A stretch of 64,000 bases of DNA from Mobula hypostoma (taxonomy: Eukaryota): contig NC_086104.1 in assembly GCF_963921235.1 (NCBI RefSeq), positions 114,886,001 through 114,950,000 on the forward strand, read 5' to 3'. Positions within the stretch are counted from its first letter, which is position 1. Each line of letters opens with the position of its first letter. Shown one piece after another: positions 2,891-42,975 of the stretch. The position numbers and the translations under genes are program-made. The notes below the pieces were generated by a model that made no database searches, was not told where the DNA came from, and worked only from the letters and a program-made list of their open reading frames with translations.

Positions 2891-2935
2891 GTGTGTTATA
2901 GAGATATCTGAAATGGCGCCCCAGTGTGTTACAGA

Positions 2936-3731
2936 TGTGACAAAAGACCAAGTTATCAGAAGATTGATGCTGATAAGAGAGACAAAGTGAGAAACATTCC
3001 AAATGTTAATGAGAGACGAGAGAGATTAATGAAAAGAGACACAGTTCCGAGTATTGTCAGACCGGTTGCTTTGAACCTGAACTGTTTGAAGTTTGATGGA
3101 CAGGCGATACCCCAGCAGGGGGATAAAAGGAACAGGTTCGCTAAGGCAAGGACACCACGAGATAATGAGACCCTGGAAGTGCGGTGTGCCCCCCCACAAG
3201 TTGGTGGGGGTTTTGGAGTTCTGGTCACGGGACCGACCATAGACGCACGGGGTGAAAAGGGTACGATTGGCGGGAACCTGGTGTGTGTGTCTGCCCTTGC
3301 CTGGGTGCCGGGTTCCCGTAGAAGAACGATCATATCCGGAACGGAGGGGTCACAGTTGGTGACCCCAGAAGATATAAAAAGGGCTCGCGCCGAAAGCTAA
3401 CTGCGAAGAACAAAGGTCTGTCTGAATCCGATTTGCATATTCTCTCTCCAATGGCACAATAGCGATTGCTGCGAACTATACTAAACTGAACTGAACTCTG
3501 CGTCACTTGAGACTGATCATTTTGCCCCTAGACTGTGATAGAGCTTGATCGATTCCTATTATCCTAGTTCTGTGTACATGTGTGTTTTATCATTGCTAAC
3601 CCGTTGCATTTACATCCTTATGTTTAGAGTACTGTGTTACTTATTTCTTTAATAAAACTTTCTTAGTTCCAGACTCCAACTAAGTGGTCCATTTCTGCTG
3701 GTTTGGCAACCCAGTTACGGGGTATGTAACA
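2936..3731 (+). mobile_element. Solo LTR of the Gmr1-type Gypsy family at 42163-46546
   Basis: TGTGACA...TGTAACA termini, 4-bp TSD CAGA (2932-2935 / 3732-3735), AATAAA at 3651; collinear with the LTR at 45683-46546. Confidence 0.93.
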
Positions 3732-5204
3732 CAGAGATCACAGGAATGGGGCCACAGTGTGTTACAGGAATCACAGGAACAGGGGCCCCAGTGTGTTACA
3801 GGGATCAAAGGAATGGCTCCCCAGTGTGTTACAGAGATATCTGAAATGGCGCCCCAGCGTGTTGCAACGATCACAGGAACAGGGCCCCAGTGTGTTACAG
3901 GGATCACAGGAATGGGGCCACAGTGTGTTACAGGGATCACAGGAATGGGGCCACAGTGTGTTACAGGGATCATAGTATCGGTTCCCCAGTGTGTTACAGA
4001 GATATCTGAAATGGCGCCCCAGCGTGTTGCAAGGATCACAATAACAGGGCCCCAGTGTGTTACAGGGATCACAGGAACAGGGCCCCAGTGTGTTACAGGA
4101 ATCACAGGAATGGGGCCCCAGTGTGTTACAGGGATCAGTGGAACAGTTCCCCAGTGTGTTACAAAGATATCTGAAATGGCGCCCCAGTGTGTTACTGGAA
4201 TCACAGGAACAGGGCCCCAATGTGTTACAGGGTTCACAGAAGTGAAGCCCTGGTGTGTTATAGAGATATCGTAAATGGGGCCCCAGTATGTTATGGAGAG
4301 ATTCGGAATGGGGCGCCAGTGTGTTACAGGAATCACAGGAACGGGGTCCCAGTGTGTTATAGAGATCACGGGAGTGGGGCCACAGTGTGTTACAGGGTTC
4401 ACAAGGGCAGAGCCCCAGTATATTATGGAAGTGGCACCCATTGTGTTACAGGGATCATGAGAAACACTTCCCAGTGCATTGTAAGAACGAGGGCCAAGTA
4501 TGTTTTAGTGATCATGGGAGTGGGGGCCTAGTGTGTTATTAGGATCAAGGGAACGTTACCCATGTGTTATTAGGATCAAGGGAACGTTACCCGTGTGTTA
4601 TTAGGATCAAGGGAACGTTACCCGTGTGTTATTAGGATCAAGGGAACGTTACCCGTGTGTTATTAGGATCAAGGGAACGTTACCCGTGTGTTATATAGAT
4701 CACAGAACCACGTCCCAGTGTGCTGTAGGAATCATCGAACACTGTGTTATAGGAAACCCTGAAATGAGGCCCCAGTGTGTTATAAGGATCAAAGGCCGTT
4801 GGCCCCAGTGTGTTATATTGAACATGGGTACCATGTCCCAGTGTTTTATAGGGATCACAGGAGCTTGGCTCCCACTCTTTGTGATGGAGCCTGGGGTCTA
4901 TAGTGCCATGCTGCAAAAGTGTGAGCTGTGTGGAATGTCAGAGTATTTAACAGATATACTCAACTATATACTCCGGGGGGATGTTTAGTAGTGTGTGGGG
5001 TAGTGCTGTATGGAGCTAGTGAGAGGCTATCAGAAGAGGAATTCCGGATCTCTGAACACAGACTGAAGTCATTGCTACCAATGGCAGAGCAATAATATTC
5101 AGGTGATTGCTCAGAAGCTGGGATTGAGGAGAAAAGATGGTCTTCGACACAGGAGATCTAGTAAATGGGGATACTTATTGTTTTCCGATTTTTCAAACAC
5201 TCAC

Positions 5205-5325
5205 CTGTTAGTTCTACATCGGGACTGAAGAACGAACCAAGTCAGAGTCACCAAGATGATCAGGGCTACAACTCCTGCTGCAGCAGCCAGTGAGACGATC
5301 AGCATTTCCTGCAATGAGAGCTCCA
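5205..5325 (-). CDS. Transmembrane exon of the Siglec-like gene (absent from the ORF track)
   Basis: Acceptor ttgtcctctcgttcttggctcctccaacAG, phase 1 in. Encodes (L)[39 protein letters not shown]: a 26-aa uncharged hydrophobic run followed by basic residues. Donor AG|GTGAGT, phase 2. Confidence 0.78.
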
Positions 5326-8300
5326 CTGTTGGAGGAGCCAAGAACGAGAGGACAATTACTTGTAGCAATATCCTTGTGGATCAAATGTGCTGTGTTGAAG
5401 GAATTCCGCACTATGTGAGGGCCAGTGCCAAGGAAGTGCTGCAGTGGGACGAGTGGTGCCCAGAGACTGCTACATGATGTGAAGGGGCAGCACTGAGGGA
5501 GTGCTGCATGGTGGGAGTGGCAGTACCAATAGAGTACAACGTTGTAGCCCTGAGGGAAAGATGCACAGTGGGAGTGACAGTACCAATAGAGTACAACATT
5601 GTAGCACTGAGGGAATGCTGCACAGTAGGACTGATAATACCAATAGAGTGCAGCACTGTGGGAGTGGCAGTACCAGAGAGCAGCTGTCCCCAACCACCGG
5701 GCCGCGGATTGGTACCGGGCCGCAAAGTATGTGCTACTGGGCCGCGAGGAAACAATATGATTTGGTGATAGGAGTCAGCTGCACCTTTCCTTATTCCCTG
5801 TCATGCTCACTGTTGAGCGAGGTCATTACCTATGCATCATCCATGTCAGCGCGGGAAGGAGATTAACTCCTCGAGCTTGCAAATGACGATGGGCTGAAAA
5901 GTATGTTTGACATAACATCTCTGCCGGCATTCTGGATCAAAGTCAAGGCTAAATATCCTGAGATAGCCACGAAAGCACTGAAAACGTTGCTTCCATTTCC
6001 AACATATCTCTGCAATGAATGCAACAAAAACTAAATTGCGGAATAGACTGGACATAAGGAACTCCGTTTGAGTATCGCTGTCTCCCATCATCCCTCGGTA
6101 GGACGGTCTCGTTGTAGGGAAACAAGCCCAGGGCTCCCACTGATTCAGCGATATTGGTGTGTTGCAATGATTTTATATGTTCATACAGGGAAAATATGTG
6201 CTGTGTATTTAATTTCCAAACATTACTTAAAATGTCATGATGCTATTGACTTATAAGTGACCTATATAACCATATAACAATTACAGAATGGAAACAGGCC
6301 ATCTCTGCCCTGCTAGTCCGTGCAGAACGCTACTCTCACCTAGTCCCACTGACCTGCACTCAGCCCATAACCCTCCATTCCTTTCCTGTCCATATACCTG
6401 TCTAATTTTTCTTTAAATGATAATATCAAACCTGCCTCTACCACTTCTACTGGAAGTTCGTTCAATACTTACTTCAAGCTCCCCTGTCCTCCCCTGATAA
6501 TTGACTTCTCACTATATTCATGTGAGGGAAATATGCACTGTGTGTTTAATATTAAATTCGTTAGATAAACCCTTTTAGAAACAAAATTGAGTGTATTAGC
6601 CAGTTATCACCCATATTCCGGTCGTGATTAACACCCCCCCCCACCCAACAGAATCGCCAAAAACGATTTGTAGGGGAAAAAAATCGGCACGTACACACAT
6701 GTGCACTGGTGCCCGCGCAAGGCTTCATGGTCATTGTAGTCTTTCATGAGGTAAACAACGTATTTGACTGATACTCTTGTCCGTTGGCAACCCTACCCAC
6801 CCCACCCCCACCTCCGGTCGGCCGGTCCGCAAGAATATTGTCAATATGAAACCGGTCCATAATGCAAAAAAGGTTGGGGACCCCTGCCATAGAGTACAGC
6901 CCTGTAGCACTGAGGGAGTGCTTCACAGTGAGAATGGCAGTGCCAATAGAGTGCAGCACTGGTCGCACTGAGGGAGCGCTGCGTGGTTAGATGGATCGTG
7001 GTGAGGGACCATTGCACTCACAGAGGAGAGAAAGCTGGACATGCGAGAATCGAGGTAGCATTGCCAAAGCAGAGAATCTGCTCTGAGGTAGTGTCCGAAC
7101 AGTGTGTGCAGAGCATTAGTAAACTTTGAACTGTTAGAGGGGGCAATACTGATGGGGGGATGTGTTTTCTGGGTGAGCAAGAACTACACTAACAGATAGG
7201 TGGTCCAGAGGAATTGCTGCGTTATGTTAAGATGTCACTGAATGCCCGCCCATACTTACACCGCACAGTCAGTGTGACTGTCTGCTCTGATGAAACAGGT
7301 GGGTATTTGACTCTGCAGGTGAGATTTTGCCCGTGGTGTTTGAGCGCTGGGGTGAGGGTCAGAACAGCTGTATATGTCAGAGTGTCACCCCACTCAGTTA
7401 CACTGCTGGAGTTTAACGCCAATACATCTGTGGGGGTGATCCAGGTGAAGTTGGGTGTCGATCCACCACACGTGATGTTGAAGGTGCAGCTTATGTTCAC
7501 TGGCTTTCCTGCAACCATTTCAGCGGGGAATATCGAGGGCTTATCTGTGAAATCTAACACAGAGAAATGGATCCTTTTAGATAAATATAACAAGTAGCAA
7601 ATGACTGCTGGGCTGGAGGAACAATTCTGACAGATTCTCTCCCTCTGCTCAAAGCACTTTCACTCTCAACACCTTTGATACTGCTGGATGAACAGGTTCA
7701 TGACTCTCAGGATTCTGCCCTAGTTTAATTAATCACTATCCACAGCAGGATGGACACAATGTTCATTAACCCTTCAATGACCATTTAAAATAGGGGGTGT
7801 ATCAATTTAATATTTGACATGCCTGGTTTGTAATGATCTGTACGAAGGTGTGACTGACGTTACAGCAGTTTATCATATTTCCTGAATTGCTGGAAAATTA
7901 TACTAGGCACTCACCAGTAACATGGAGCTGTGTTGTGGGTAGATAGCTATGTCGATCCACATTTTCAGATGCAATTTTGAAGTAATAATAACCTTCATCT
8001 TCCTGCATGATATTGTCTATAACCAGGGAACAGTCGCCATCTTTCATTTTTCCGGACAGCCGGGTCCGACGATGAAACCTCGGGGACACACGACTCTGAT
8101 GCTTAGAGTGGAAAGTGACCGTTTGAGTCAGACATTCATCTTTCATCCAGATTCCATCCCAGGGTTTATTGTCCACGTGCAATGGATAACTGTAGTGGCA
8201 TGGAATCCGAGCACACAAACCCCTCTGCGCCGTCACATCTTGTGGAGTGTCAGCTCTCCACTCTTCCGACACTGCACAGAGGAGACAAGGAACATCATAC

Positions 8301-11300
8301 AGATTCTCTCCCCCAGCCTCAGGTCCCCACTATGGATTCATCCCAAATTTCAGGTGGACACATCCTATGTCACTAATGAGACATTGCTGCACTGCTGGAG
8401 ACACAGGTCTAAGGGTAGCTACTCTGTCCAAAAGGCAGAGCAAATGATGCATCGTGGTGTCAGAGCAGCAGAGTAACGAGTAGTAGGAAGGATCATTCGG
8501 AAAGAAGGGCTGGCTATTTGTCCCTCACTCCAAACGCCTTCACTCTGAGGTCCCTGAGTACTGGGTTAGAAGAACCCCCGCTAGAACAGAGTGGTGTTCC
8601 CTCAGAATCTCACCTCTAAGAGAGCAGTGTACCCTCAGAATCTCCCCTTTGACAGTGTGATGTCTCTCAGAATCTCCCCTCAGAGAGAGTAGTGTTCCCT
8701 CAGTACCTCCACACTGACAGTGTGATGTCTCCCAGTATCTCCCCTCTTACGGTTTGGTGCTCTCTCAGTATCTCCTCTCAGACAATGTGGTTTCCCTCAG
8801 TATCTCCCCCCTGAGAGTGTGATGTCCCTCAGAATCTCTCCTCTGAGAGAGCAGTATTCTCTCAGTATCTTCCCTCAGAGAATGTGATTTTACCTCAGTA
8901 TCTCCCCTCTGACAGTGTGGTTTACTTTCAGTATCTCCCCTCTAACAGAGTGGTTATTCTCAGTATTTCCCCTCATACAGTCTGGTGACCCACAGTATCT
9001 CTCATCTCACAGTGTGATGTCCCTCAGTATTCACCTGCTGACAGTGCAGTGTCCTTCAGTATCTCCCCTCTGACAATGTAGTGTCCCTCAGTATCTCCCC
9101 TCTCACAATGTGATGTCTCTCAGTATTTCTCGTCTGACAGTGTGAATTTGTCTCAGTATCTCCCCTCTGAAAATATGGTGACCCTCAGTATCACCCGTCC
9201 GACAGTGTGATGTCCCTCAGTATCCCCGTCTGAAAGTGTTGTGTCTCTGAGTATCTCCCTTCAGACCCTGTGGTGTCCCTCAGTATCTCCCCGCTGACAG
9301 TGTAGTGTCCCTTAGTATCTCCCCTCTGGTGTCACTCAATATCACCCCTCTGACAGTGTGGTGTCCGCCTGTACCGCCCCACTGACGGTGGGTTTCTCTC
9401 ACTATCTCCCCAATGACAGTGTGATTTCACTTAGTATCTCCCCTCTGAGAGTGTGGTGCTCTCACAGTATTTCCTATCTGACAGTATGGTGCTCAACCGA
9501 TATCTCCTCTCTGACAGTCTGGTGTCTCTCAGTATCTAACCTCTGACAGTGTGATGTCTCTCAGTATCTCCCCTCTGACAGTCAGTTGTACCTCTATATC
9601 TCCCATCTAACAGTGTGGTTTCTCTCAGTACCTCCCCTCAGACAATGTGGTGTCCCCCTGTATCTCCGATCTGACGGTGTGGTGTCCCTCAGAATCTCCC
9701 CTCTGACAGTTTGATGTCTCTCAGTATCTCTCTTCTGACAGTGTGGTGCTCTCTCAGCATCTGCCATCTGACAGAGTGGTGACCCTCACTATCTCCCCTA
9801 GCATATTGTGATGTCTCTCAGTATCTCACCTCTGACAGAGTGAATTCTCTCAGATTCTCCCCTCTGACAGAGTGAATTCTCTCAGATTCTCCCCCGTGAC
9901 AGTGTGATCTCTCTCAGTACCTCCCCTCTGACAGTTCTCTCACTATCTCTCCTTGACAGTGTGATGTCTCTCAGTGTCTCCCATCTGATAGAGTGGTGTC
10001 TCTCAGTATATTCCCTCTGACAGTCTGATGACCGTCAGTATCTCCCCTCTGACAGTCTGTTGTCTCTCAGTGTCTCCCCTCTGACATTGTGGTGTCCCTT
10101 AGTATCTCCACTCTGACAGTGTGATGTTCCTTCAGTACCTCCCCATTGACAGTGTGATGCTCACTCAGTATCACCCCTCTGACAGTGTGGCGTCCCCCTG
10201 TACCTCCTCTCCGACAGTGGGATTCTGTCACTATCTCTCCCATAACAGTGTGACTTCTCTCAGTATCTCCCCTGTAACAGTCTGGTGCTCTCAGTATCAC
10301 CCCTCTGACAGAGTGGTGTCCCTCAGTATCTCCCTTATCACATTGTGATGTCTCTCATTATCTCACCTCTGACAGACTGAATTCTCTCAGGTTCTCCCCT
10401 CTGACAGTGTGATGACCCTCACTATCTCCCCGTTGTCAGTGTGAACCTCTCTCAGTATCTCCTCTCTGAGAGTATGGTGCTGTCCTGATATCTCCCCTCT
10501 GACAGTGTGATGTTCCCTCATTATCTCCCCTCTGACAGTGTGATGTCCCTCAGTATCTCCCCCATGAGAGTCTGTTGTCTCTCTGCATCTCCCCTCTAAC
10601 AGTGAGGTTTCTCTCAGTATCTCCACTTTCAAAGTGTGGTGTCTCTCAGTTTCTCCCCTCCGACAGTTTGATGTTCCCTCAGTATCTCCTCTCTGACAGA
10701 GTAATGTTAGCTCAGTCTGTCGCCCCTGACAGTTTGGTGTCTCTCAGTATCTCCTCTCTAATAGTCTGGTGTCTCTCAATATCTCCCCTCTGACAGTGTG
10801 GAGCCCCCTGTACCTCCCCTCCGACAGTGGGTTTCTCTCACTACCTCCACCATGACAGTGTGATTTCTCTCAGTATCTCCCCTCTGACAGTGTGGTGCTC
10901 ACTCACTATCTCTCCTCTGACAGTGTGATGTCTCTCAGTGTCTCCCATAAGATAGAGTGGTGTCTCTCGGTATCTCCCCTCTGACAGTGTGATGTCCCTC
11001 AGTATCTCCCCTCTAACAGTGTGGTTTCTCTCAGTATCTCTCCTCTGTCAGTGTGGTGTCCCTCAGCATCTCCCCTTTCAAAGTGTAGTGTCTCTCAGTT
11101 TCTCTTCTCCGACAGTTTGAAATTCCCTCACTATCTCCTCTCAGACAGAGTGATGTTAGCTCAGTCTGTCCCCTCTGACAGTTTGATGCTCTCTCAGTAT
11201 CTCCCCTCTGAGAGGTTGGTCTCTCTCGGTATCTCCCCTCTGACAGTCTGGTGTCTCTCAGCATCTCCTCTCTAACAGTGTTGTATTCCTTTTGTATCTC

Positions 11301-14300
11301 CCCTCTGACAATGTGTTTTGCCTCAATATCTCCCCTCTGACAATGCGGTGCTCTCACAGTATCACCCATATGACAGAGTGAATTCTCTCAGATTCTCCCC
11401 TCTGACAGTATGGATCCCCCTGTACCTCCTCTCCGACAGTGGAATTCTGTCACTATCTCCCCGATGACAGTGTGATTTCTCTCAGTATCTCCTCTCTGAC
11501 AGTGTGGTGCTCTCTCAGTAGCTCCCATCTGACAGAGTGCTGTCCCTCAGTATATCCCCATCACATTGTGATCTCTCTCATTATCTCCCCTCTGACTGAG
11601 TGAATTGTCTCAGTAAAACCCCTCTGACAGTGTGGAGCTCTCTCCATATCTCCCCTCTGACAGTCTGTTGTCTCTCAGTATCTCCCCACTAACTGTGGTT
11701 ATTCTCAGTATTTTCCCTTGTACAGTGTGGTGTCTCTCAGTATCTCTCCTCTGACAGTGTGGTGCTCATTCCATATCTCCCCTCTGACAGTGTGGTTTAC
11801 TTTCAGTATCGCCCCTCTGACAGTCTGTTGTCGCTCAGTATCTCCCCTCTAACAGTGTGGTTATTCTCGGTATTACCCCTCATACAGTCTGGTGAGTCAC
11901 AGTATCTCCTGTCTGAGTGTGTGATTTCCCTCAGGATATCTCGTCTGACAGTGTGAATTTCTCTCAGTATCTCCCCTCTGAAAATATGATGTTCCCTCAG
12001 TATCACCCGTCCAACAGTGTGATGTCCCTCAGTATCTCCCTCTGGCAGTGTTGTGTCTCTCAGTATCTCCATTCAGACCCTGTTGTGTCCCTCAGTATCT
12101 CCCCTCGACAGTGTGGTGTCACCTCTCTGACAGTGTAGTGTCGTCCTGCAATTCCCCTCGGATGGTAGGTATCTCTCATTAGCTCCCCCATGAACGTATG
12201 ATTTCTCTCAGTACCAGCCCACAGACAGTGTGATGTCCCTCACTCTCTCCCCACTGACAGTGTGACGTCCATCACTATCTCCCCTTTGTCAGTGTGAACC
12301 CCTCTCAGTATCTCCCCTCTGAGAGCATGTTACTCTCCCAATATCTCCCCTCTGACAGTGTGATGTCTTTCAGTATCTCCCCTCTGACAGTGTGGAGTCC
12401 CCCTGAACCTCCTCTCCAATAGTGGGATTCTGTCACTATCTCCCCCATGACAGTATGACTTCTCTCAGTTTCTCCCCTCTGACAGTGTGGTACTCTCTCA
12501 GTATCTCCCACCTGACAGAGTGGTGTCCCTCAGTATCTCCTCTATCACATTGTGATGTCTCTCAATATCTCACCTCTGACTGAGTGAATTGTCTCAGTAT
12601 CTCCCCTCTGACAGCGTGGAGCTCTCACCATATCTCCCCTCTGACAGTGTGGTGTACTTTCAGTATCTCCCCACTGACAGTCTGTTGTCTCTCAGTATCT
12701 CCCCTCTAACAGTATGGTTATTCTCAGTATTTCCCCTCATACACTCTGGTGACCCACAGTATCTCCCATCTGACAGTGCGATGTATTTACTCAGTATTTC
12801 CCCTCTCACATCATCATTATCTCCCCCATAACAGTTTGATGTCTCTCAGTATCTCCCCTCTGACAGTGTGGTCGTCTCTCAGTATCTTCCCTCTGACAGT
12901 GTGGTGTCTCTGAGCATCTCTCCTCTGGCACTGTGATGTTCCCTCGATATCTCTCCTCCGACAGAGTGATGTCTCTCAGTAGCTCCCCTCTCAAAATGTG
13001 GTATTCCCCCAGTATCTCCCTTCTGACAGTGAGGTTTCTCTCAGTATCTCCCCTCTGACAGTGTGGTGTCTCTCAGTATCTCCCCTCTGACAGTGTGGTG
13101 TCCCTCAGTATCTCCCCTCTCAAAGTGTGGTGTCTCTCAGTTTCTCCCCTCTGACAGTTTGATATTCCCTCACTATCTCCTCTCTGACAGTGTGATGTTA
13201 GCTCAGTATGTCCCCTCTGACAGTGTGATGCTCTGTCAGTATTTCCCCTCTGAGAGTCTGGTGTCTCTCAGTATCTCCCCTCCAACAGTGTTGTATTCCC
13301 TTTGTATCTCCCCTCTGACAGTCTGGTGTCCCTCAATATCTCCCACCTGACAGTGTGGTTTCTCTCAGTATCTCCCCTCTGACAATGTGATGTCCTTCGG
13401 TATCACCCCTCTGACAGTGTGGTGTCCCTTAGTATCTCCACATTGACAATGTAATGTCTCTCAGTATCTCCCCTCTGACAGAGTGATGATCCCTCAATAT
13501 CTCCGCTCTGACAGTGTGGTGTCTCTCAGTATCTCTGCTCTGACAGGGTGATGATTCCTCAATATCTCCCCTCTGACAGTGTGGTGTCCCTTAGTATCTC
13601 CACATTGACAGTGTGATGTCTCTCAGTATCTCCCTTCTGACAGTGTGGTGTCTCTCAGTATCTCCACTCTGACAGTGTGGTGTCTCTGAGCATCTCTCCT
13701 CTGGCACTGTGATGTTCCCTCGATATCTCTCCTCCGACAGAGTGATGTCTCTCAGTAGCTCCCCTCTCAAAGTGTGGTATTCCCCCAGTATCTCCCTTCT
13801 GACAGTGAGGTTTCTCTCAGTATCTCCCCTCTGACAGTGTGGTGTCTCTCAGTATCTCCCCTCTGACAGTGTGGTGTCCCTCAGTATCTCCCCTCTCAAA
13901 GTGTGGTGTCTCTCAGTTTCTCCCCTCTGACAGTTTGATATTCCCTCACTATCTCCTCTCTGACAGTGTGATGTTAGCTCAGTATGTCCCCTCTGACAGT
14001 GTGATGCTCTGTCAGTATTTCCCCTCTGAGAGTCTGGTGTCTCTCAGTATCTCCCCTCCAACAGTGTTGTATTCCCTTTGTATCTCCCCTCTGACAGTCT
14101 GGTGTCCCTCAATATCTCCCACCTGACAGTGTGGTTTCTCTCAGTATCTCCCCTCTGACAATGTGATGTCCTTCGGTATCACCCCTCTGACAGTGTGGTG
14201 TCCCTTAGTATCTCCACATTGACAATGTAATGTCTCTCAGTATCTCCCTTCTGACAGAGTGATGATCCCTCAATATCTCCGCTCTGACAGTGTGGTGTCT

Positions 14301-29300: not shown

Positions 29301-32300
29301 TCATTGTAGATGCTTTGGTGATAATTTAACAAAAATCTGTGGACTCTGGGCAGATCCTGACGGATTGAAAGAAGGAAAATGTCACGCCACTGTTCAAAAA
29401 CAGGATGTAGACAAAAAGCAGATCACTATAGATCACTATAGACTGCATTGGCGCTGCTTCCTGCACGCATGCAGAACTCGTTGACTTTATTAACTTTGCC
29501 TCCAACTTTCACCCTGCCCTCAAGTTTACCTGGTCCATTTCTGACACCTCCCTCCCCTTTCTAGATCTTTCTGTCTCTGTCTCTGGAGACAGCTTATCCA
29601 CTGATGTCTACTATAAGCCTACTGACTCTCACAGCTATCTGGACTATTCCTCTTCTCACCCTGTCTCTTGCAAAAATGCCATCCCCTTCTCGCAATTCCT
29701 CCCTCTCCGCCGCATCTGCTCTCAGGATGAGGCTTTTCATTCTAGGACGAGGGAGATGTCTTCATTTTTTAAAGAAAGGGGCTTCCCTTCCTCCACTATC
29801 AACTCTGCTCTTAAACGCATCTCCCCCATTTCACGTACACCTGCTCTCACTCCATCCTCCCACCACCCCACTAGGAATAGGGTTCCCCTGGTCCTCACCT
29901 ACCACCCCACCAGCCTCCGGGTCCAACATATTATTCTCCGTAACTTCCGCCACCTCCAACGGGATCCCACCACTAAGCACATCTTTCCCTCCCCCCCCTC
30001 TCTCTGCATTCCGCAGGGATCGCTCCCTACACAACTCCCTTGTCCATTCGTCCCCCCCATCCCTCCCCACTGATCTCCCTCCTGGCACTTATCCGTGTAA
30101 GCGGAACAAGTGCTACACATGCCCTTACACTTCCTCCCTTACCACCATTCAGGGCCCCAAACGGTCCTTCCAGGTGAGGCATCACTTCACCTGTGAGTCG
30201 ACTGGGGTGATATACTGCGTCCGGTGCTCCCGATGTGGCCTTTTATATACTGGTGAGACCCGACGCAGACTGGGAGACCGCTTTGCTGAACATCTACGCT
30301 CTGTCCGCCAGAGAAAGCAGGATCTCCCAGTGGCCACACATTTTAATTCCACATCCCATTCCCATTCTGACATGTCTATCCACGGCCTCCTCTACTGTAA
30401 AGATGAAGCCACACTCAGGTTGGAGGAACAACACCTTATATTCCGTCTGGGTAGCCTCCAACCTGATGGCATGAACATTGACTTCTCTAACTTCCGCTAG
30501 GCCCCACCTCCCCCTCGTACCCCAGCTGTTACTCATTTTTATGCACACATTCTTTCTCTCACTCTCCTTTTTCTCCCTCTGTCCCTCTGAATATACCTCT
30601 TGCCCATCCTCTGGGTCACCCCCCCCCATCTTTCTTCCCGGACCTCCTGTCCCATGATCCTCTCGTATCCCCTTCTGCCTATCACCTGTCCAGCTCTCGG
30701 CTCCATCCCTCCCCCTCCTGTCTTCTCCTATCATTTTGCATCTCCCCCTCCCCCTCCAGCTTTCAAATCCCTTACTCACTCTTCCTTCAGTTAGTCCTGA
30801 CGAAGGGTCTTGGCCCGAAACGTCGACTGCGCCTCTTCCTATAGATGCTGCCTGGCCTGCTGCGTTCACCAGCAACTTTGATGTGTGTCACTATAGGTCA
30901 GTTAGTTTAATATCTGCAGTTGGGAAAATGATTGAAGCTATCAATAAAGAAGAAATAGCGAGGCATCTGGAAAGAAATGGATCCATCTGGCAGACACAGC
31001 ATGGATTCAGCAAAGGCAGGTCCTGTTTAACAAACTTAATGGAGTTCTTTGAGGAAGTAACGAGCACAATGTATAGAGGGGAACAGATGTACATCATTTA
31101 CTTGGATTTCAAGAAGGCATTTGATAAGGTGCCACATAAGCTAAGGGTGCAGAGAGTCGGGGTGATGTATTAGCATGGACAGAGGATCGGTTAACCAATA
31201 GAAAGCAGAGAGTTGGGTGTTTCCCTGGTTGGCAATCAGTGGTGAGTGGTGTGCCACAACTGTTCACGATCAGCAAGAGGGACCAAGTATAATGTTTGCT
31301 GATGACACAAAATTGAATGGAAAAGCAAATTGTGCAGAGGATACAGACAGTCTACAGAGAGATAGAGATAGGTTAAGTAGATGAGCAAAGGTCTGGAAGA
31401 TGGAGTACAAAGCATTCTACAAGTATGTGAAGAGCAAGAGAATAAGATGTGAGAGAATAGGACCAATCAAGTGTGACAGTGGAAAAGTGTGTATGGAATC
31501 GGAGGAGATAGCAGAGGTACTTAATGAATACTTTGCTTCAGTATTCACTATGGAAGAGGATCTTGGTGATTGTAGGGTACAGCAGATTAAAGAGCTTGAA
31601 AGAAAGAGGATGTGCCGGAGCTTTTGGAAGACATCAAGTTGGATAAGTCACTGGGACCAGATGAGATGTACCCCAGGCTACTGTAAGAAGCAAGGGAGGA
31701 GATTGTTGAGCCTCTAGCGATGATCTTTGCATCATCAGTGGGAATGGGAGAGGTTCCGGAGGATTGGAGGGTTGTGGATGTCATTCCCTTATTCAAGAAA
31801 GGGAGTAAAGATAGCCCAGGAAATTATAGACTAGTGAGTCTTACTTCAGTGGTTGGTAAGTTGATGGAGAAGATCCTGAGAGGCAGGATTTATGAACATT
31901 TGGAGAGGCATAATATGATTAGGAATAATCAGCATGGCTTTGTCAAGGGCAGGTCGTGCCTTACGAGCCTGATTGAATTTTTTGAGGATGTGAATAAACA
32001 CATTGATGAAGGTAGAGCCATTGACGTAGTGTATGTGGATTTCAGCAAGGCATTTGACAAGGTACCCCATGCAAGGCTGATTGAGAAAGTAAGGAGGCAT
32101 GGTATCCAAGGGGACCTTGCTTTGTGGATCCAGAATTAGCTTGCTTACAGAAGGCAAAGAATGGTTGTAGACAGGTCATATTCTGCATGGAGGTCGGTGA
32201 CCAGTGGTGTGCCTCAGGGATCTGTTCTGGAACCCCCACTCTTCGTGATTTTTATAAATGACTGGATGAGGAAGTGGAGGGATGGGTTAGTCAATTTGTT

Positions 32301-35300
32301 GATGTCACAAAGGTTGGGGGTGTTGTATGTAACGGCTTCTCTGTAATGTTAACTAATGTAATGGCTTCTCTGTAATGTTAGCTGCTAAGGCTAATGTAAT
32401 GGCTTCTCTATAATGTTAACTGCTGAGGTAGTGGTTTCTCTGTAGCAGAAATGTTTGGGTTATGACTAGAGATAATGGGACTTTGGAATTCAGTGGCTAT
32501 CCAATGGGAGAAATGTTATTCTTTCTTGCGTGTCTGGGAGCTGAGGTTTTCATGGAGTTTTTTGTCAAGGAGAGAGGAAGAGGAAGATCGCGTGTGGAGA
32601 GCGCTGGTAGACCACTGGATGGCGTAGGCTGGGATCCGAGGGTCAGCAACGTTCGGTGGAGATCGATGGTGGAGGAATGTCTACTGAGTGAGCTCCAATT
32701 GATACTGTGACTTTAATTTGGGCTTTTATTTTGTTTTGTTTATTTTCATACTAACCCTATATTCAGATTAAGATTCATAAAGTCTATCATTTAATTGCAT
32801 ATGGTGTACTGTCTGATATTTTGCATTGTGGGTTTGTAATTGGGAGTACATTACACAGCATCCACATAAATGTGAATACACAGTTTGGCGGGGCCGAAAG
32901 CTGATACCCCTAGACGAATGTGAGCGGGCGAGCCTGAGGGTTACATGTGGATAGTGAGGAGGTTCTATCAGAGATTACAGCGGGACATTGATAGGATGCA
33001 AAACTGGGCTGAGAAGTGGCAGATGGAGTTCAACCCAGATAAGTGTGAGGTGATTCATTTTGGTAAGTCAAATATGATGCCAGAATATAGTATTAATAGT
33101 AAGACTCTTGGCAGTGTGGAGGATCAGAGGGATCTTGGGGTCTGAGTCCATAGGACACTCAAAGCTGCTGCGCAGATTGGCTCTGTGGTTAAGAAGGCAG
33201 ACGGTGCATTGGCCTTCATCAATCATGGGATTGAGTTTAGGAGCTGAGGGGTAATGTTGCAGCTATATAGGACCCTGGTCAGGCCCCACTTGGAGAACTG
33301 TGCTCAGTTCTGTTCACCTCACTACAGGAAGGATGTGGAAACTCTAGAGAGAGTGCAGAGGAGATTTACAAGGATATTACCTGGACTGGGGAGCACGCCT
33401 TATGAGAATAGGTTGAGTGAACTCGGCCTTTTCTCCTTGGAGCGACGGAGGATGAGAGGTGACCTGATAGAGGTGTATAAGATGATGAGAGGCATTGACT
33501 GTGTGGATAGTCAGAGGCTTTTTCCCAGGGCTGAAATGGTTGCCACAAGAGGGCACAGGTTTAAGGTGCTGGGGAGTAGGTACAGAGGGGATGTCAGGGG
33601 TAAGTTTTTTACTTAGAGAGTGGTGAGTGCGTGGAATGGGCTGCCAGCAATGGTGGTGGAGGTGGATACGATAGGGTCTTTTAAGAGACTTTTGGATAGG
33701 TACATGGAGCTTAGAAAAATAGAGGGCTATAGGTAAGCCTAGTAATTTCTAAGGTAGGGACATGTTCGGCACAACTTTGTGGGCCGAAGGGCCTGTAATG
33801 TGCTGTAGGTTTTCTATGTTTATATGTCCTATGACATGGTTACAGCATTGGCTGATTAGCAGGAGGCAGCAAGTGGAAATAAAAGGTTGGCTGTTAGTGA
33901 CAAGTGGTGTTCCACAGGGGTCAGTGTTGGGACCACTTCTTTTTATGCTGTATAGCAATGATTAGGTGATGGGGACAGATGGCTTTGTTGCCACATTTCC
34001 AGATGATACAAAGTTTGGTGGAGGAGCTGTGCTGAGGAAACAGGTAGGTTGCAGAAGGACTTAGACAGATTTGGAGAATGGGCAAGAAAGTGGCAAATGA
34101 AATGCAATGTTGGAAAATGCATGGTCATGCACTTTGGAATTAGAATTAAATGTGCAGACTATTTTTCAGACAGGCAGAAAATCCAAAAATCTGAGATGCA
34201 AAGGGATTTGGGAGTGCTTGTGCAGAACACCCTAAAGGTTTACTTGCAGGTTGAGTCAGTGGTGAGGAAGGCAAATGCCATGTTAGCATTCATTTCAAGA
34301 GGTCTTGAATTCAAGAGCAAGGATGTGCTCCTCATCTCAGAAAAGATGTGCTGGCATTGGAGAGGGTTCAGAGGAGGTTCACAAGGATGATTCCGGGAAT
34401 GAAAGGGTTATCATACAAAGAACGCTTGATGGCTTTGGGTCTGTGCTCGCTGGAATTTAGAAGAATGAGGGGGGATCTCATTGAAACCTTTTGAATGTTG
34501 AAAAGCCTAGACAGAGCAGATGTGGAAAGGATGTTTCCCATGGTCGGGGAGTCTAGGACAAGAGAGCACAGCTTCAGGATAGGGGGGGTCCATCTAAAAC
34601 AGACTTGAGCCAAAGGTTGTGAATTTGTGGAATTTGTTCTCACAGGCAGCTGTGGAAGCCAAGTCGTTAGGTGTATTTAATGCAGAGATTGATAGGTTCT
34701 TATTGGATACAGCATCAAAAGTTACAGGGAGCAGGCTGCGGAATGGGGTTGAGGAGGGGAACAAAGGATCAGCCATGATTAAATGGCGGAGAAGACTCAA
34801 TGGGCCAGGTGGTGTAATTCTGCTTCAATGTCTAATGTTACCAGGACTTGAGGACCTGAGTTGTAGTAGAAGGTTGAATAGGGTAAGACTTAATTCCATG
34901 GAACGTAGGAAGATGAGGGGAGATTTGGAGAGGTATATATTATGAGGGACACAGCTGGTGGCAGAGTGGCATCAGCGCTGGACTGCGGGGTGGGAGGTCC
35001 CAAGTTCGAATCCAGCCAGCTCCCCTGCACGCCTAGGCATTTCATGAGCTGGTGATCTCTTTGAAAAACTCACCTGGCAGAAAGAAAATGACAAACCACT
35101 GCTGTAACTTGCCTCGTACACGATTTCCCGCTACGTCAGAGCAGTGTGGGAGGAAGTCGTCAGCCAACTGGAAAAATTCTGGATACGACGTACCTTTTTT
35201 TTATATTATGAGGGTATAGATAGGGTAAATGGAAGGCTTTCTTCCCTGAGTGTGGGTGAGACTAGACGTAGAGATCGTATGTTAAAGGTGAAAGGTGAAA

Positions 35301-38300
35301 TACTTAAGAGGAAGAGGGCAAATTTCTTCACTCAGAGGAATGAGCTACCAGGTGAAGTAGTGGATGTGGGTTTAATTTGAACATTTAAGAGAAGTATGGA
35401 TAAGTCCATGGATGGGAGGGGTATGGAGGGCGATGTGTAGGCCCATGGGAATAGGCAGAATAATAGTTTAGCATGGACTCGATGGGCCAAAGGGCTCGTT
35501 TCTATGCTGTAATGGTGTCTATTTCATGTTTTCCATGGTTTACTCTATTCACCACACTTTGCCCATACTCTACCTTTATGCTTTGTGTCCTCCTCTTCAG
35601 AAGTTAATTTTCTTCTTTGGAGTCTTCTGAAAGATTTGCAACCATATCTTTGTTTTCTTTACCTATCCCTGTGTACACTTGCATTCCATTTCGTCAATCA
35701 GTAAAAATCCCATTTACCTTGTTACCTAGCCAATGCTCTGCCTGTAATATCTTCAATAATAGCTTCCACTATTTTCCCTAATGTGTACTCTCCCACTGTC
35801 TTCCCTGTTGTTTGAGAGAAAAAAAACCTTTGCAACATTCCAATCTTATGCAACCTTTCTCAATGTTGGTGAACTGTGGAAAATTAAAACCAAAACAACA
35901 GCTTTCTGCTGTCAAAACCCAAGGATGAGGTGCTTCAGAACAGACAGAGTTTCCCTCACATTCAGCCTGGGCACCTTCAACAGACAAGGCTAGGTAGATG
36001 ACACAGCTCCCTGTTCAGGCAGCACTGGCTCAGAGTCTCTGCAATATACATTTAGCAATTATCACAACAAATGGAGACAATTTGCACTGAAACCCCTCAC
36101 CTACCTCTCTCTGCGAGGATTTTGAACAAAATAGTGGGATTTATGGAGGAAGTGAGATCAAAGTTGGAAAAGATTGCTAAAGCAAAAAGTAGAAATAAGT
36201 CACAAAACAGATGTGTAAACATAGAAAAGGAGAAACAGATTGTGACAGGAAATGACAGAGTAAATGCACCAGAGGGCTGGTGTTACACAAATCTAAAGGC
36301 CTTGCAGTTGAATGTGCAGAGTATTGGTTTATTATTGTCACTTGAAAAGCTTGTATATACAGAGCATTACACAGTGCATTGAGGTAGAACAAGGCAAAAA
36401 TATAACAATGCAGAATAAAGAGCAACAGTTACAGAGAAAGTGCAGTGCAGGTAAATAACTTACTGCAGGATCAAAACAAAGTAGCTGAGGTCAACAGTCC
36501 ATCCTATCATTCAAGAGTCTGACAACAACTGAAGACTGGTGTACATGCTTTCAGGTTTATGCAGTGTTTGAACTGTGACTATGTGATGTTGAGGAACTGC
36601 AGGAAGCTTGGAAAAGCTGGAGGGTGGGTCTGCTCACTTATTATGATTTTAGATGGCAAAGGAGAAGCAAATTAACAATCAGAATCAGGTTTATTGTCAC
36701 CGGCATGAGTCATGAAATTTGTTAACAGTAGCAGCATTACTATGCAATACATAATATAGAAAAAAAATTGGTAAATAAGAGTGTATATATATTCATGGGT
36801 TCAATGTTCCTTTAGGAATTGGATTGCAGAGGGGAAGAAGCTGTTCCTGAATCGCTAAGTGTGTGCCTTCAGGCTTCTGCACCTCCTTCCTGACATTAAC
36901 AGTAAGAAGGCACGCCCTGGGGGATGGGTCCTTAATAATGGATGCCACCTTTCTCTGAGGCACCGCTCCTTGAAGACGTCTTAGATTACGGAGGCTAGAA
37001 CCCAAAATGGAGCTGACTAATATTACAACTTTCTGTAGGTTCTTTCAGTCCTGTACAGTAGCACCCACCCATACCAGACAGTGATGTGGCCTGTCAGAAT
37101 GCTTTCCATGGTATATCTATTGAAATTTGACTGTTTTAGCTGATAAACAAAATCTCTTCAACTCCTAATGAAATATAGCCGCTGTCTTGCCTTCTTTATA
37201 GCTGCATCAATATGTTGGGACCAGGTCAGATCCTCAGAGATCTTGAAACCTAGGAACTTGAAGTTGCTCTCTCTCTCTCTCCACTCTGATCCCTCTATGA
37301 GGATTGGTTCATGTTTCCTCATCTTATCCTTCACAATCAGCTCTTTCATCTTACTGACATTGATTGCAAGGTTATTGGTACGACACCACTCAACTAGCTA
37401 GCATATTTCGCTCCTGTATGCTCTCGCGTCTCCATCTGAGATTCTAGGAATAATGGTAGCATCATCAGCAAATTTATCAATGGCATTTGAGTCACACAGT
37501 CATGAGTATCAAGAGAGAACAGTGGGCCCTTGGGTGTGTCAGTGATGGTCATCACTGAGGAGGAGATATTATTAGCAATCCACACAGATTGTGGTCAAGA
37601 ATCCACTTGCAGAGAGAGGGACAGAAGCCCAGGTTCTGTAGCTTATCGATCAGAACTGTGTGAATTATGGTGTTGAATGCTAAGCTATAGCCAACATAAA
37701 AGCATTGTGACAGAGGTGTGTGCATTGTCCAGGTGATCTAAGGCCATGTGAAGAGCCATTGAGATCGTTCCTGCCATAGACCTATTGTGGTGATAGGTAA
37801 ATTACAGAGAGTCTTGAGCACTGATATAATTGTTGCCTTTTTTTGAAGAGGCTGGGAAGATCCAATTATGTAATATAAACCTACAAAATTAACGTTGTTT
37901 TGTGTAAAATAAGCCAACCAATAAAAACAATATAGAAAATATATCAATAAGTTTAAAAGAATGCAGAGAAAATCGACAGGACTTGTGGACTTCCTGAACT
38001 TTATTCCCTGGAATACAGGAGAATGAGGGGAGATCATATAGACGTATACAAAGTAATGAGGGATGCAGATCGGGTGTATCCATGCATGTTTTTTGGTTGG
38101 GTGAGACTACAACTGGAGGCCAATGCTTCAGGGTGAAAGGTGAAATATTTAAGAGAAATCTGAAGAAGAACGTCTTCCCTCAGAAGGTGGTGTAAGCGTG
38201 AAAAGAGCTGCCAACAGAAGTGGTGTATGGGGGCTGAATTGCAGCATATAGGGGAGGTTTGGATAAGTTAATTGTTGTGAGGTGAACAGACAACTGTGTT

Positions 38301-40264
38301 TCAGAACCAGACAGGCGTGACTCGGCACAGGGTGAACTAAATGGACAGTTTCTGTGCTTAATGTCCAGTGACTGTATTAGCATAAATAGGTCATTTTGTC
38401 TAGATGGTAATGTGTGATGTGCTGGGACTTACATTTTATTTTAACCTTAAAAATGATGATTGCAAGATGGGCTGCTGTGTTTGGTGATAGACAGGAAATT
38501 GAGCTGTGAAGTGGACAGAATGTTGCAGGGTTTTGACTAGAAATGTTAAAAATCCCTTTCCTGCCACATATGCCGCTTGACCCTCTGCATTGCTGCACTA
38601 TATTGTTTGCTGTTCCCATACCAGCATTAATGGAGCCCACCCACACTGGGAAGCAGGCTCAGACATCCTGAGGAAATAAACGGTGCTGTAAAAATGTTGT
38701 CCATCTGTAACTTAGTTTATAACAGAGAGAAGTGAAGGAGATAACATGATAGCATAGACAGTGAATTGGAGATTGTGTTAGAACTGATGGAGGCACAACA
38801 AAGTCACTGATAATCCCATTCTGCATTAATGATTTGTGAATTGTGTTACTGGGAAAGCAGCACAGTTTGGCTATTTCTCCCTGACTGCTGAGTGTCTGTC
38901 ATTATATAATTAGACAAAACACTTACCATCAACACGTAGTTGTGTTATGGTGGAGTAGCTATAGCGATCCAGGTCTTTAAATTCAATTCTGAAGTGATAA
39001 GGACCTTCATCTTCCTGTGTAACATTGTTTATATTCAAGGAACAGTTCTTGTCATTCAGGTTTCCAGAGAGCCAGGTCCGATGGTGATACTTTGGCATTA
39101 TATGACTGCTATTCTTGGAATGAAAGGCTATCTGTGACCATGAAAACAGGTTATTTGAGTTAAACCAGATTCCCACCCGCTGGTCATTTGCCAGACGTGA
39201 TGGATAGCTGTATTGACACCGAATGTGTGCACACAGGCCCTTCCGCACTGTAACTTCTTGTTGAATGTCGGCTGTCCATTCCTCTGACACTACAACTGAG
39301 GAGAGATTATGAATATTAAGCAACAAGACAGTATTGAAGAAGATCCTCAGTGTTGACAGAGTTACACTGCTGTTGGTGTGTACTCAGAGTACTGCAGAAT
39401 TCTTGGTAAGCACTATGCAGTAATGGTGGTAATACTGAAGGAGTTTACACAGACACAAGAACAATGCCAGCAATACTCCACTATCAGCACTGCAAATCTG
39501 GAGACCCCACATAAGGCAGCTTGGTAGCGTATTGGTCAGCAAAATGCTTTACAGTACAAGCCAGATGGGTTCAATTCGTGCTGCTGCCTGTAAGAAGTTT
39601 ATACATTTGCCCCATGACCACGTCCTCCCAAAGACATACCGGTTCATAGATCATTGTAAATTGCCCCTTGATAGACTAGGATTAAATCATGAGATTGCTG
39701 GGTGGCCTCTGGACAACTGTAGGTTCCAAGTACTGTTGGATTTCTGTACAATCAGAATGGCTGCAATGTGGGAGTACTAAAGGAGCATTAAAGGAGCACT
39801 AATCAGAATGGCAACAATGTGTTTGTACTGAAGGAGCATTAAAGAAGCACTAATCAGAATGGCAGCAATGTGGGAGTACTAAAGGAGCATTAAAGGAGCA
39901 CTAATCAGAATGGCAACAATGTGTGTGTACTGAAGGAGCATTAAAGAAGCACTAATCAGAATGGCAGCAATGTGGGAGTACTAAAGGAGCATTAAAGGAG
40001 CACTAATCAGAATGGCAACAATGTGTGTGTACTGAAGGAGCACTAATCAGAATGGCAGCAATGTGGGAGTACTAAAGGAGCATTAAAGGAGCACTACTCA
40101 GATTGGCAACAATGTGTGTGTACTGAAGGATATTTAAGGGAGCGCTAATCTGTTAACCTCTATCAAAATTAGTTTCCATCCCAACTCATTGACAGTTAAT
40201 CAGCTGAGCTGCTGTTGCTGGTACCTTGCAGAATTGATAGGAGAAAATACCACTTTCCAATCAT
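5205..40264 (-). CDS. Joined model: Siglec/MAG-like type I membrane receptor, leader-V-V-V-V-C2-TM (~628 codons to the end of the TM exon; tail unresolved)
   Basis: Seven exons (40+369+345+360+357+294+121 nt) with canonical AG/GT and phase-1 junctions give one open frame. I found only one leader, one C2 and one TM exon in the interval. Joining is inferred; no transcript evidence. Confidence 0.65.
5420..5680. repeat. 57-bp tandem repeat (~4 units), resuming at 6887-6990 beyond the hAT insertion
   Basis: CTGAGGGA at 5493, 5550 and 5607; the same unit continues right of the transposon. Confidence 0.8.
5681..6886 (+). mobile_element. Non-autonomous hAT (Charlie-like) DNA transposon with a remnant of the transposase C-terminal dimerisation domain
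   Basis: 15-bp TIRs CAGCTGTCCCCAACC / GGTTGGGGACCCCTG (2 mismatches); 8-bp TSD CCAGAGAG / CCATAGAG. + frame at ~5870-6130 reads [47 protein letters not shown] ... KLRNRLD. Confidence 0.88.
6270..6475 (-). mobile_element. CR1 3'-end fragment inside the hAT
   Basis: Reverse complement resembles the CR1 3'UTR/tail seen in other copies here (GATGGCCTGTTTCCATTCTGTAATTG...). Confidence 0.5.
7260..7553 (-). CDS. C2-set Ig exon of the Siglec-like gene
   Basis: ttctctgtgttAG acceptor, GTAAGT donor, 294 nt, phase 1-1. [38 protein letters not shown]...[10 protein letters not shown]...TVTLTVR has the Siglec domain-2 Cx5C and LTCRV motifs. Confidence 0.92.
7915..8271 (-). CDS. Siglec-type V-set exon, type B copy 2 (Arg->Lys)
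   Basis: ctctgtgcAG / GTGAGT, 357 nt, phase 1-1; [27 protein letters not shown] motifs. Confidence 0.92.
8575..23010. repeat. ~14.4-kb intronic satellite of 32-bp units (consensus TCTCTCAGTATCTCCCCTCTGACAGTGTGGTG), roughly 450 units, with higher-order blocks
   Basis: Continuous 32-bp periodicity; near-exact internal duplications with 776-bp and 260-bp offsets. Confidence 0.96.
23335..23525. mobile_element. Degenerate palindromic Penelope terminal remnant
   Basis: Inverted arms resembling the Penelope 3' terminus; eroded hammerhead CTGATGAAGGCTCTCAGGCCAAAAC. Confidence 0.5.
23757..24116 (-). CDS. Siglec-type V-set exon, type A copy 2 (Arg retained)
   Basis: tttttcatctgtAG / GTAAGT, 360 nt, phase 1-1; [28 protein letters not shown]. 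Confidence 0.92.
24770..25114 (-). CDS. Siglec-type V-set exon, type B copy 1 (Arg->Lys)
   Basis: tttccctctcggctatAG / GTGAGT, 345 nt, phase 1-1; [25 protein letters not shown]. Confidence 0.9.
25435..26380 (+). mobile_element. Degraded CR1 LINE reverse-transcriptase fragment
   Basis: Broken RT motifs (MDFSKAFDK; [13 protein letters not shown]) with stops and deletions. Confidence 0.8.
29441..30887 (+). mobile_element. Penelope-like retroelement 3' part (RT thumb, GIY-YIG endonuclease, 3'UTR with hammerhead)
   Basis: [47 protein letters not shown] motifs; one frameshift near 30000; flanked by duplicated TCACTATA(G). Confidence 0.93.
30792..30829 (+). ncRNA. Minimal type I hammerhead ribozyme (Penelope-associated), core intact
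   Basis: TAGTC-CTGACGA-A-GGGT CTTG GCCC-GAAA-C-GTC-GACTG: CUGANGA and GAAA core, stem II, 5-bp stem I (TAGTC/GACTG), palindromic ACGT stem III, predicted cut after C30824. Confidence 0.8.
31400..33828 (+). mobile_element. 5'-truncated CR1 LINE (RT to 3' tail), interrupted by a solo LTR
   Basis: [49 protein letters not shown]; TTCTATGT-type 3' tail at ~33810-33828. Confidence 0.9.
32328..32945. mobile_element. Probable solo LTR (second family)
   Basis: 618 bp with inverted termini TGTAAC...GTTACA; flanks TGTA / TGTG (4-bp TSD, 1 mismatch); removing it restores the CR1 sequence; internal tandem repeats at 32330-32450. Confidence 0.7.
33830..34838 (+). mobile_element. CR1 LINE 3' fragment
   Basis: [26 protein letters not shown]; CR1 3'UTR. 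Confidence 0.85.
34839..35530 (+). mobile_element. CR1 3' fragment interrupted by a SINE
   Basis: [11 protein letters not shown], then NFFTQR and a CR1 3'UTR after the SINE. Confidence 0.7.
34949..35201 (+). mobile_element. tRNA-derived SINE
   Basis: A box TGGCAGAGTGG (34959), B box GTTCGAATCC (35004), T-run end, 13-bp TSD TATATTATGAGGG (34936-34948 / 35202-35214). Confidence 0.85.
36678..37815 (-). mobile_element. Rex/L2-type LINE 3' fragment
   Basis: Minus strand [50 protein letters not shown]; AATAAACCTGATTCTGATT tail. Confidence 0.8.
37990..38270 (+). mobile_element. Degraded CR1 3' fragment
   Basis: Similar to the CR1 3' ends at 35200-35450 and 61655-62070. Confidence 0.55.
38927..39295 (-). 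CDS. Siglec-type V-set exon, type A copy 1 (N-terminal domain, Arg retained)
   Basis: aatctctcctcAG acceptor (in-frame alternative AG 6 nt further, start 39289), GTAAGT donor, phase 1-1; [31 protein letters not shown]. Confidence 0.92.
39516..39745 (+). mobile_element. Degenerate HE1-like tRNA-derived SINE
   Basis: A-box-like TGGTAGCGTATTGG, B-box-like GGTTCAATTC; body similar to the SINE at 63575-63860. The family name is from memory. Confidence 0.5.
39750..40150. repeat. 51-bp minisatellite, 8 units alternating between two variants (102-bp dimer)
   Basis: AATCAGAATGG at 39750, 39801, 39852, 39903, 39954 and 40005, then one shortened unit; GCAGCAATGTGGGAG alternates with GCAACAATGTGTGTG. 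Confidence 0.92.
40225..40264 (-). CDS. Signal-peptide (leader) exon of the Siglec-like gene (absent from the ORF track)
   Basis: gcacgATG (A at -3), [13 protein letters not shown], donor CAAG|GTACCA phase 1. Joined to the next exon it gives [20 protein letters not shown]. An acceptor-like tgttctcttttAG at 40307-40309 hints at an upstream non-coding exon. Confidence 0.72.
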
Positions 40265-42949: not shown

Positions 42950-42975
42950 TGGGGTTCTCATCCAGGATTTTGAAC
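42950..42975 (+). promoter_or_regulatory. Primer-binding site, degenerate match to the tRNA-Pro 3' end
   Basis: TGGGGTTCTCATCCAGGATTTTGAAC versus the tRNA-Pro complement TGGGGGCTCGTCCGGGATTTGAAC, 4 nt after the 5' LTR. Confidence 0.7.

Follow-up and report, generated by a model that had tools for sequence, protein, structure and literature searches.

A Siglec-like gene with four tandem V-set exons in the devil ray Mobula hypostoma

A 64-kb stretch of contig NC_086104.1 of the devil ray Mobula hypostoma (RefSeq assembly GCF_963921235.1, positions 114,886,001 to 114,950,000), here called the window, carries on its minus strand a single Siglec-like gene in which four V-set exons, named A1, B1, A2 and B2 from the N-terminal side, are joined consecutively in transcripts, the A1–B1, B1–A2 and A2–B2 junctions all being found in RNA contigs. 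Textbook Siglecs have one sialic-acid-binding V domain. The ray gene very probably encodes a type I membrane Siglec composed of a signal peptide, the four V-set domains in this order, one C2-set domain, an uncharged transmembrane helix and a 73-residue cytoplasmic tail, with consecutively spliced exons, a predicted sialic-acid site in A1 and internal V domains that would serve as a stalk. Coordinates below are window positions.

Gene structure and transcript evidence

Exon reading, tblastn of each exon against all 64 kb and Pfam agree on one leader exon, four intact V-set exons, one C2-set exon and one transmembrane exon (Table 1), as had been proposed in the original prediction, which was made from the letters alone. 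The tblastn searches returned these four V exons and the one C2 exon and no others. Each V and C2 exon is of phase 1-1 and has an open reading frame, with AG acceptors and GT donors throughout. The donor types, which alternate GTAAGT, GTGAGT, GTAAGT, GTGAGT across A1, B1, A2 and B2, and the motifs earlier quoted for the two types (FRI or FKI, KDEC, RTWL or RTRLSG, NCSL or GDCSL) are all present in the exons, and the intron lengths previously put at 13.8 kb, 653 bp, 15.5 kb and 361 bp are measured as 13,812, 653, 15,485 and 361 nt. Ig_CD22 is the Pfam family of the Siglec first domain, and all four V exons exceed its cut-off (30–36 bits, cut-off 27) as well as that of V-set (39–58 bits, cut-off 26), while the C2 exon matches C2-set_2 (8e-08); the domain calls that had been suggested as a check thus bear out the exon assignments. 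The claim that neither a leader nor a C2 exon lies between the V exons also stands, given tblastn within the 64 kb, the consecutive RNA junctions and a scan upstream of B1, A2 and B2 for mini-exons resembling leaders, which yielded only weak candidates without good donors. One such candidate, at 24380 with a poor donor, was rejected, as the RNA junctions contradict hidden leaders.

Spliced with the acceptor at 39295, the seven exons encode 628 amino acids that are identical to residues 1–628 of P0151, which is RefSeq Siglec 12 [Mobula hypostoma]. The window is therefore most of this Siglec-family gene, and the exon model is the public RefSeq model. For the remaining residues 629–701 of P0151, the cytoplasmic tail, tblastn found no exon in the window, so the tail exons lie beyond the window start, past the satellites at 1–4730. 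Exon A1 offers two in-frame AG acceptors 6 nt apart, at 39295 and 39289; the upstream one is the RefSeq choice and adds Val-Val, and the other is the equivalent site by homology with B1, A2 and B2.

Transcript evidence was obtained from RNA-type runs under two organism labels, from which assembled short-read contigs were mapped on 23740–25130. The runs contain 36–39% of the sampled words of this stretch, of which exons make up 51%. The B1–A2 junction is seen as an exact joint 24116/24770 (GT..AG on the gene strand) in runs X1, X2 and X4. For A2–B2, contigs of X1 and X4 end at 23757 in bases that, once reverse-complemented, match the beginning of exon B2, and an X2 contig continues into B2. For A1–B1, contigs of X2 and X7 end at 25115 in sequence whose reverse complement is the final 30 bases of exon A1. 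The junction-bearing contigs thus come from four runs (X1, X2, X4 and X7). Intron depth in the mapped contigs is zero, which argues for RNA. With three V–V junctions in RNA and no intron coverage, the four V exons therefore belong to one gene and are joined in order in its transcripts, as predicted. Non-consecutive junctions at the B1 acceptor, the B1 donor and the A2 donor were seen in none of the runs. The RNA runs also contain words of 7200–8300, a stretch that includes exon B2; the B2–C2 and C2–transmembrane joins rest on the RefSeq model and on word shares, not on mapped contigs.

Other contigs of X1 and X7 match only 23855–23895 and 24901–24932 (32–41 nt, with 2–4 differences) and then diverge. 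Their probable source is expressed Siglec-like paralogues with the conserved D-to-E strand region in common.

Origin of the V array

A maximum-likelihood (ML) tree of 62 V domains from rays and sharks, in which mammalian sequences were not included, places the four ray V types in one batoid-only clade (98/93) with all shark V domains outside it. As the ray V types fall in a ray-only clade, the duplications post-date the ray–shark split, and the internal V domains appear to have arisen by V-exon duplication within batoids. Inside this clade A1 stands alone and B2 groups with (B1, A2), with weak support. The (A1,A2),(B1,B2) grouping for which a domain tree had been proposed as a test is thus not recovered by ML, and approximately unbiased (AU) tests leave it standing (p 0.50 for an A1+A2 clade, p 0.38 for a B1+B2 clade). 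B1 and B2 are plausible sisters; the tree leaves the sisterhood of A1 and A2 and the order of duplication undecided.

An alternative reading is that the array stems from one duplication of an A-B two-exon unit and forms a true bivalent lectin in which binding (A) and non-binding (B) domains alternate; we consider this a tenable but rather doubtful account. Pairwise V-exon identities in Mobula favour A1–A2 (53%) and B1–B2 (56%) over A1–B2 (49%) and A1–B1 (40%), so that by identity the A/B pairing is only slightly better than cross pairs, and at the DNA level A2–B2 (80%) is about as alike as A1–A2 (82%). The quartet columns for A1A2|B1B2 are 6:2:2 in favour in Mobula and 1:5:2 against in Hypanus, a contrast that arises because the stingray orthologues do not share the A signatures (NCSL, the W of RTWL and the Arg of A2). 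The B-type signature is steadier, since B1 and B2 of Mobula, Hypanus and Hemitrygon all show the Cys-bearing KDEC, a Lys where the Arg would stand and a gap of two residues. The alternating donor types and the AU tests, which reject neither clade, are likewise compatible with a unit duplication; the ML tree, in setting A1 apart and B1 with A2, speaks (weakly) against it.

The introns had been read as a further sign of unit duplication, both A-to-B introns being long and both introns after B short, and this argument did not survive. The A2–B2 intron is long because of a 14.4-kb minisatellite and the A1–B1 intron because of retroelement open reading frames (ORFs), and in the 300–800 bp of intron flanking the exons the supposed unit copies are no more alike than cross pairs.

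Cysteines of the internal domains

Every V domain has G-x-C-x4-C together with N/D-C-S-L which, aligned with Siglec-7, is the Siglec three-Cys pattern. In CD33, C36 of the V domain bonds C169 of the C2 domain and C41–C101 is the internal pair (PMC6669322), and MAG has the equivalent interdomain bond C37–C165 (PMC5150538). Counted over the elasmobranch relatives, 98 of 107 V domains that come first or stand alone have three Cys, and 38 of 40 internal V domains have at least four. In most internal domains the extra Cys occupies position 31, within the B-C loop (PSC), where A2 also has it; in the B type it belongs to KDEC. In A2 this Cys follows the B-strand Cys by 7 residues and precedes the C-strand Trp by 10, and the corresponding distances in the C2 exon are 6 and 9; the B-C-loop Cys of the C2 exon (ITC) is, by homology, the putative partner in the interdomain bond. 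In total the ectodomain contains an even number of Cys, 18. By analogy, the internal extra Cys may serve the interdomain bond by which V is tied to C2 in ordinary Siglecs, in which case each internal V domain would receive a disulfide from the preceding domain and a stapled V–V chain would result.

A single origin of all PSC-bearing internal domains, a group named post hoc, was rejected by the AU test (delta lnL, the difference in log-likelihood, 74; p 0.002), and placing ray A2 together with the shark D2-type domains was disfavoured, not rejected (delta lnL 18.6, p 0.075). Repeated gain of the PSC Cys is likely on these phylogenetic grounds. A broader proposal can be offered only tentatively: V-exon amplification in elasmobranchs would have been repeated and independent (in rays, in Scyliorhinus, in Mustelus and in an older shark D1/D2 pair), each new internal V domain gaining a Cys that takes the V-to-next-domain disulfide, so as to give a rigid stapled chain in which the count of intact Arg sites varies (four in catshark, two in devil ray and one in stingrays). 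If true, nature would here provide a series of Siglecs whose valency and reach can be tuned.

The arginine site and predicted sialic-acid binding

The top PDB sequence matches are exclusively Siglecs, namely Siglec-7 (1.9e-16), Siglec-5, CD33, Siglec-8, sialoadhesin, MAG and Siglec-10. The A1 Arg (YHFR) aligns with the F-strand Arg of Siglec-7 (YFFR), and the three Cys align too. This essential F-strand Arg (Y-x-F-R) is present in A1 and A2 (YTFR), and B1 and B2 read YYFK. The A1 Arg is kept in Mobula, Hypanus and Hemitrygon in a Y-x-F-R-I-E-F context and, because of this conservation and the Siglec three-Cys pattern, A1 is the predicted sialic-acid-binding domain; the main role of the internal V domains would be that of a stalk holding A1 at a distance from the membrane. 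The notion of a bivalent receptor with two Arg sites does not carry over to the stingrays, as A2 of Hypanus (P0260) and Hemitrygon (P0257) has Ser at the Arg position (YTFSIKF), along with a 6–7-residue deletion in the C'-region relative to Mobula A2. The second Arg site is therefore not conserved and is Mobula-only at best, where A2 may be a second binding site.

It is also conceivable, and in our judgement unlikely, that the protein has a Siglec-like build without sialic-acid binding, its V array recognizing a protein or other ligand or being no more than a spacer or decoy. The Arg position is occupied by Lys in two of the four domains in all species and by Ser in stingray A2, single-V batoid paralogues lacking the Arg exist (K in Mobula birostris, E in Hemitrygon), and the G-strand Trp of Siglec-7 aligns to a gap. 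Moreover, the best whole-model structural match in Foldseek (E 1e-30) is pIgR, a protein-binding receptor with five tandem V-type Ig domains. The latter match, at a template-modelling score of ~0.2, 18% identity and no Siglec sequence features, reflects likeness in domain count and type, not kinship, and the fold search otherwise gave only generic multi-Ig matches. The conserved A1 Arg in its conserved context and the highest sequence similarity being to sialic-acid-binding Siglecs both stand against a non-binding receptor and favour A1 as the sialic-acid site.

Relatives in the databases and known Siglecs

A profile of the four V domains was searched against 1.84 billion representative proteins, and its top match is a 620-residue protein with four matches. 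In Hypanus sabinus the order A1-B1-A2-B2-C2-transmembrane occurs twice, in XP_059838704.1 (655 amino acids) and in the partial XP_059815055.1; four-V orthologue models with the A1-B1-A2-B2 order are P0260 and P0001, and the Hypanus gene spans ~77 kb and ~63 kb. The Hypanus models share the domain order of the Mobula gene and differ from it by the A2 Ser and the deletion noted above. Mobula–Hypanus identity is 84, 83, 79 and 77% for the four V domains and 84% for C2, and with this cross-species conservation there is no sign of exon decay in any of the four V domains. For Hemitrygon akajei there is an A2-B2 model, truncated at the 5' end. Separate paralogue models with fewer V domains comprise A1+B2+C2 in Hypanus (P0259) and A1+C2 in Hemitrygon (P0010).

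Siglec-like models with two to six V domains are common in shark annotation: Scyliorhinus canicula 'Siglec 12 X1' has four, S. torazame five to six, Mustelus three, and Carcharodon, Cetorhinus and Chiloscyllium two. They resemble the ray gene in their tandem Siglec-type V domains ahead of C2 and in the extra B-C-loop Cys (PSC) of internal domains, and differ from it in that all their V domains keep the Arg, their internal domains lie in clades apart from those of rays and their tails are of ITIM (immunoreceptor tyrosine-based inhibitory motif) plus ITSM-like (immunoreceptor tyrosine-based switch motif) type. Further multi-V models include one of Xenopus with three V-like domains and one of a mormyrid fish with six, and some multi-V database models may be fused gene models.

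The architecture had been called possibly undescribed. As far as databases are concerned this does not hold, because RefSeq contains the identical model and its Hypanus orthologues, and multi-V models are common in elasmobranchs; it does hold for the literature, where a search for multi-V Siglecs in cartilaginous fishes found no relevant paper, and P0151 and the Hypanus models are automatic Gnomon predictions without published description. The architecture is thus new to the searched literature, not to databases.

Among described Siglecs, primate Siglec-12 (Siglec-XII) alone has more than one V-set domain, namely two (PMC6288428). The ray gene, which the annotation pipeline named Siglec 12, resembles it in having tandem V domains, but has four V domains rather than two, only one C2 domain and a tail with YxN motifs rather than an ITIM. 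It is apparently not an orthologue of mammalian SIGLEC12, because its V duplications are ray-specific (the 98/93 clade of the tree without mammalian sequences). With the CD33-related Siglecs (Siglec-7, Siglec-5, CD33 and Siglec-8), its best PDB matches, the Arg, the Cys pair of the B–E disulfide and the interdomain Cys align; those proteins have one V domain followed by C2 domains and ITIM or ITIM-like tails or a charged transmembrane segment, whereas the ray gene has neither a canonical ITIM nor a charged transmembrane segment. Four sequence features of the Siglec family are found in the ray protein, namely a first V-set domain of Siglec type, the F-strand Arg (A1, A2), the three-Cys V domain and a C2 domain with a B-C-loop Cys, and the P0151 tail lacks the ITIM plus ITIM-like or ITSM combination of inhibitory CD33-related Siglecs. 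A paper on fish Siglecs, whose text makes no mention of sharks or cartilaginous fishes, reports fish genomes to be without CD33-related Siglecs (PMC7226832).

Transmembrane span, tail and probable signalling

The transmembrane exon has no Lys or Arg in its hydrophobic span, and thus no basic residue for DAP12 coupling. Within the P0151 tail (residues 629–701) no match to [SIVL]xYxx[IVL], the ITIM, or to TxYxx[VI] was found. Three YxN motifs (YTN, YEN and YAN) are present there and are conserved in Hemitrygon, and the tails of the shark relatives carry LLYASI and TEYAQI. The phosphorylated form, pYxN, is the consensus for the Grb2 SH2 domain, and CD22 has such a site, which serves here as a lead only. 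Because of the three YxN motifs, the lack of ITIM or ITSM and the uncharged transmembrane segment, the receptor probably signals by SH2 recruitment to phosphotyrosines, not through DAP12.

Weighing the overall reading

The interpretation of the locus as one four-V Siglec with A1 as its predicted binding domain has to be set against several findings that tell the other way. The leader–A1, B2–C2 and C2–transmembrane junctions lie outside the contig-mapped stretch; the chain of V exons is built from overlapping contigs, no single contig spanning all four; short-read assemblies drop rare isoforms, so exon-skipping forms could be missed; and the run type is only guessed as RNA, one run being flagged 'probably DNA'. 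At the protein level, B1 and B2 carry Lys and stingray A2 carries Ser at the Arg position, and the KDEC Cys follows the C-strand Trp, at the domain end that on an Ig-topology reading is far from the preceding domain, which leaves its pairing uncertain. An AlphaFold2 model of the whole protein shows five beta-sandwich domains and a transmembrane helix at 593–625, with modest confidence (predicted local distance difference test, pLDDT, 70; predicted template-modelling score, pTM, 0.34).

That the V exons are cassettes spliced mainly into one- or two-V isoforms (e.g. A1-C2 or A1-B2-C2), with the four-V form minor or one of several, is improbable: any subset would splice in frame as all V exons are of phase 1-1, rare variants are lost from assembled contigs and the P0259 and P0010 models have just such compositions, but these models differ from the four-V genes in contig or in sequence and so represent paralogues rather than isoforms, only consecutive junctions occur at the B1 acceptor, B1 donor and A2 donor in any run, the four domains are equally conserved between species, and the internal domains have a conserved extra Cys.

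Repeats and feature coordinates

A minisatellite at 8586–22977 (14.4 kb, 32-bp unit, ~448 copies, 73% matches) fills nearly the whole A2–B2 intron and shows strong strand asymmetry (GC skew ~-0.27, AT skew ~-0.33). Decayed retroelements span 28000–34400 and 42000–59400.

Table 1. Exons, introns and repeat-derived features of the gene and its surroundings (window positions)
Feature	Position	Strand	Remarks
Leader exon	40225..40264	-	ATG at 40264; 13 codons + 1 nt; phase-1 donor GTACC; residues 1-13 of P0151
Leader–A1 intron (intron 1)	39296..40224	-	51/102-bp tandem repeat, ~8 copies, at 39750-40150
V-set exon A1	38927..39295	-	N-terminal domain; 3 Cys; canonical Arg in YHFRIEF; donor GTAAGT
A1–B1 intron	25115..38926	-	13,812 nt; decayed retroelement ORFs on + strand
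V-set exon B1	24770..25114	-	Lys at Arg position (YYFKIEF); extra Cys in KDEC; shortened B-C region; donor GTGAGT
B1–A2 intron	24117..24769	-	653 nt; GT..AG; exactly removed in RNA contigs, intron depth 0
V-set exon A2	23757..24116	-	Arg present (YTFRIKF); extra Cys in B-C loop (PSC); donor GTAAGT
A2–B2 intron	8272..23756	-	15,485 nt; mostly 32-bp minisatellite
V-set exon B2	7915..8271	-	Lys at Arg position (YYFKIAS); extra Cys in KDEC; donor GTGAGT
B2–C2 intron			361 nt
C2-set exon	7260..7553	-	3 Cys including B-C-loop Cys (ITC); donor GTAAGT
Transmembrane exon	5205..5325	-	Hydrophobic span, no charged residue; donor GTGAGT; ends in phase 2
31-33-bp satellite arrays	1-2540, 3731-4403, 4530-4730		Downstream of transmembrane exon, in intron leading to cytoplasmic exons
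RVT_1 ORF	31720-32139	+	A1–B1 intron; decayed retroelement
GIY-YIG ORF	29604-30500	+	A1–B1 intron; decayed retroelement
SCAN	43045-43614		Upstream of gene; decayed retroelement
Integrase zinc domain	44438-45148		Upstream of gene; decayed retroelement
Endonuclease-reverse transcriptase ORF	47264-48742		Upstream of gene; decayed retroelement
zf-RVT	58270-59334		Upstream of gene; decayed retroelement

Significance

The gain is limited in that the gene model is already public and the function is inferred. Nevertheless, the locus shows, with transcript support, that rays express a four-V Siglec-type receptor, and database models suggest a wide distribution of such V arrays among elasmobranchs. Should disulfides chain the internal domains and some of these domains retain binding, these receptors would represent natural variation in lectin valency and reach.

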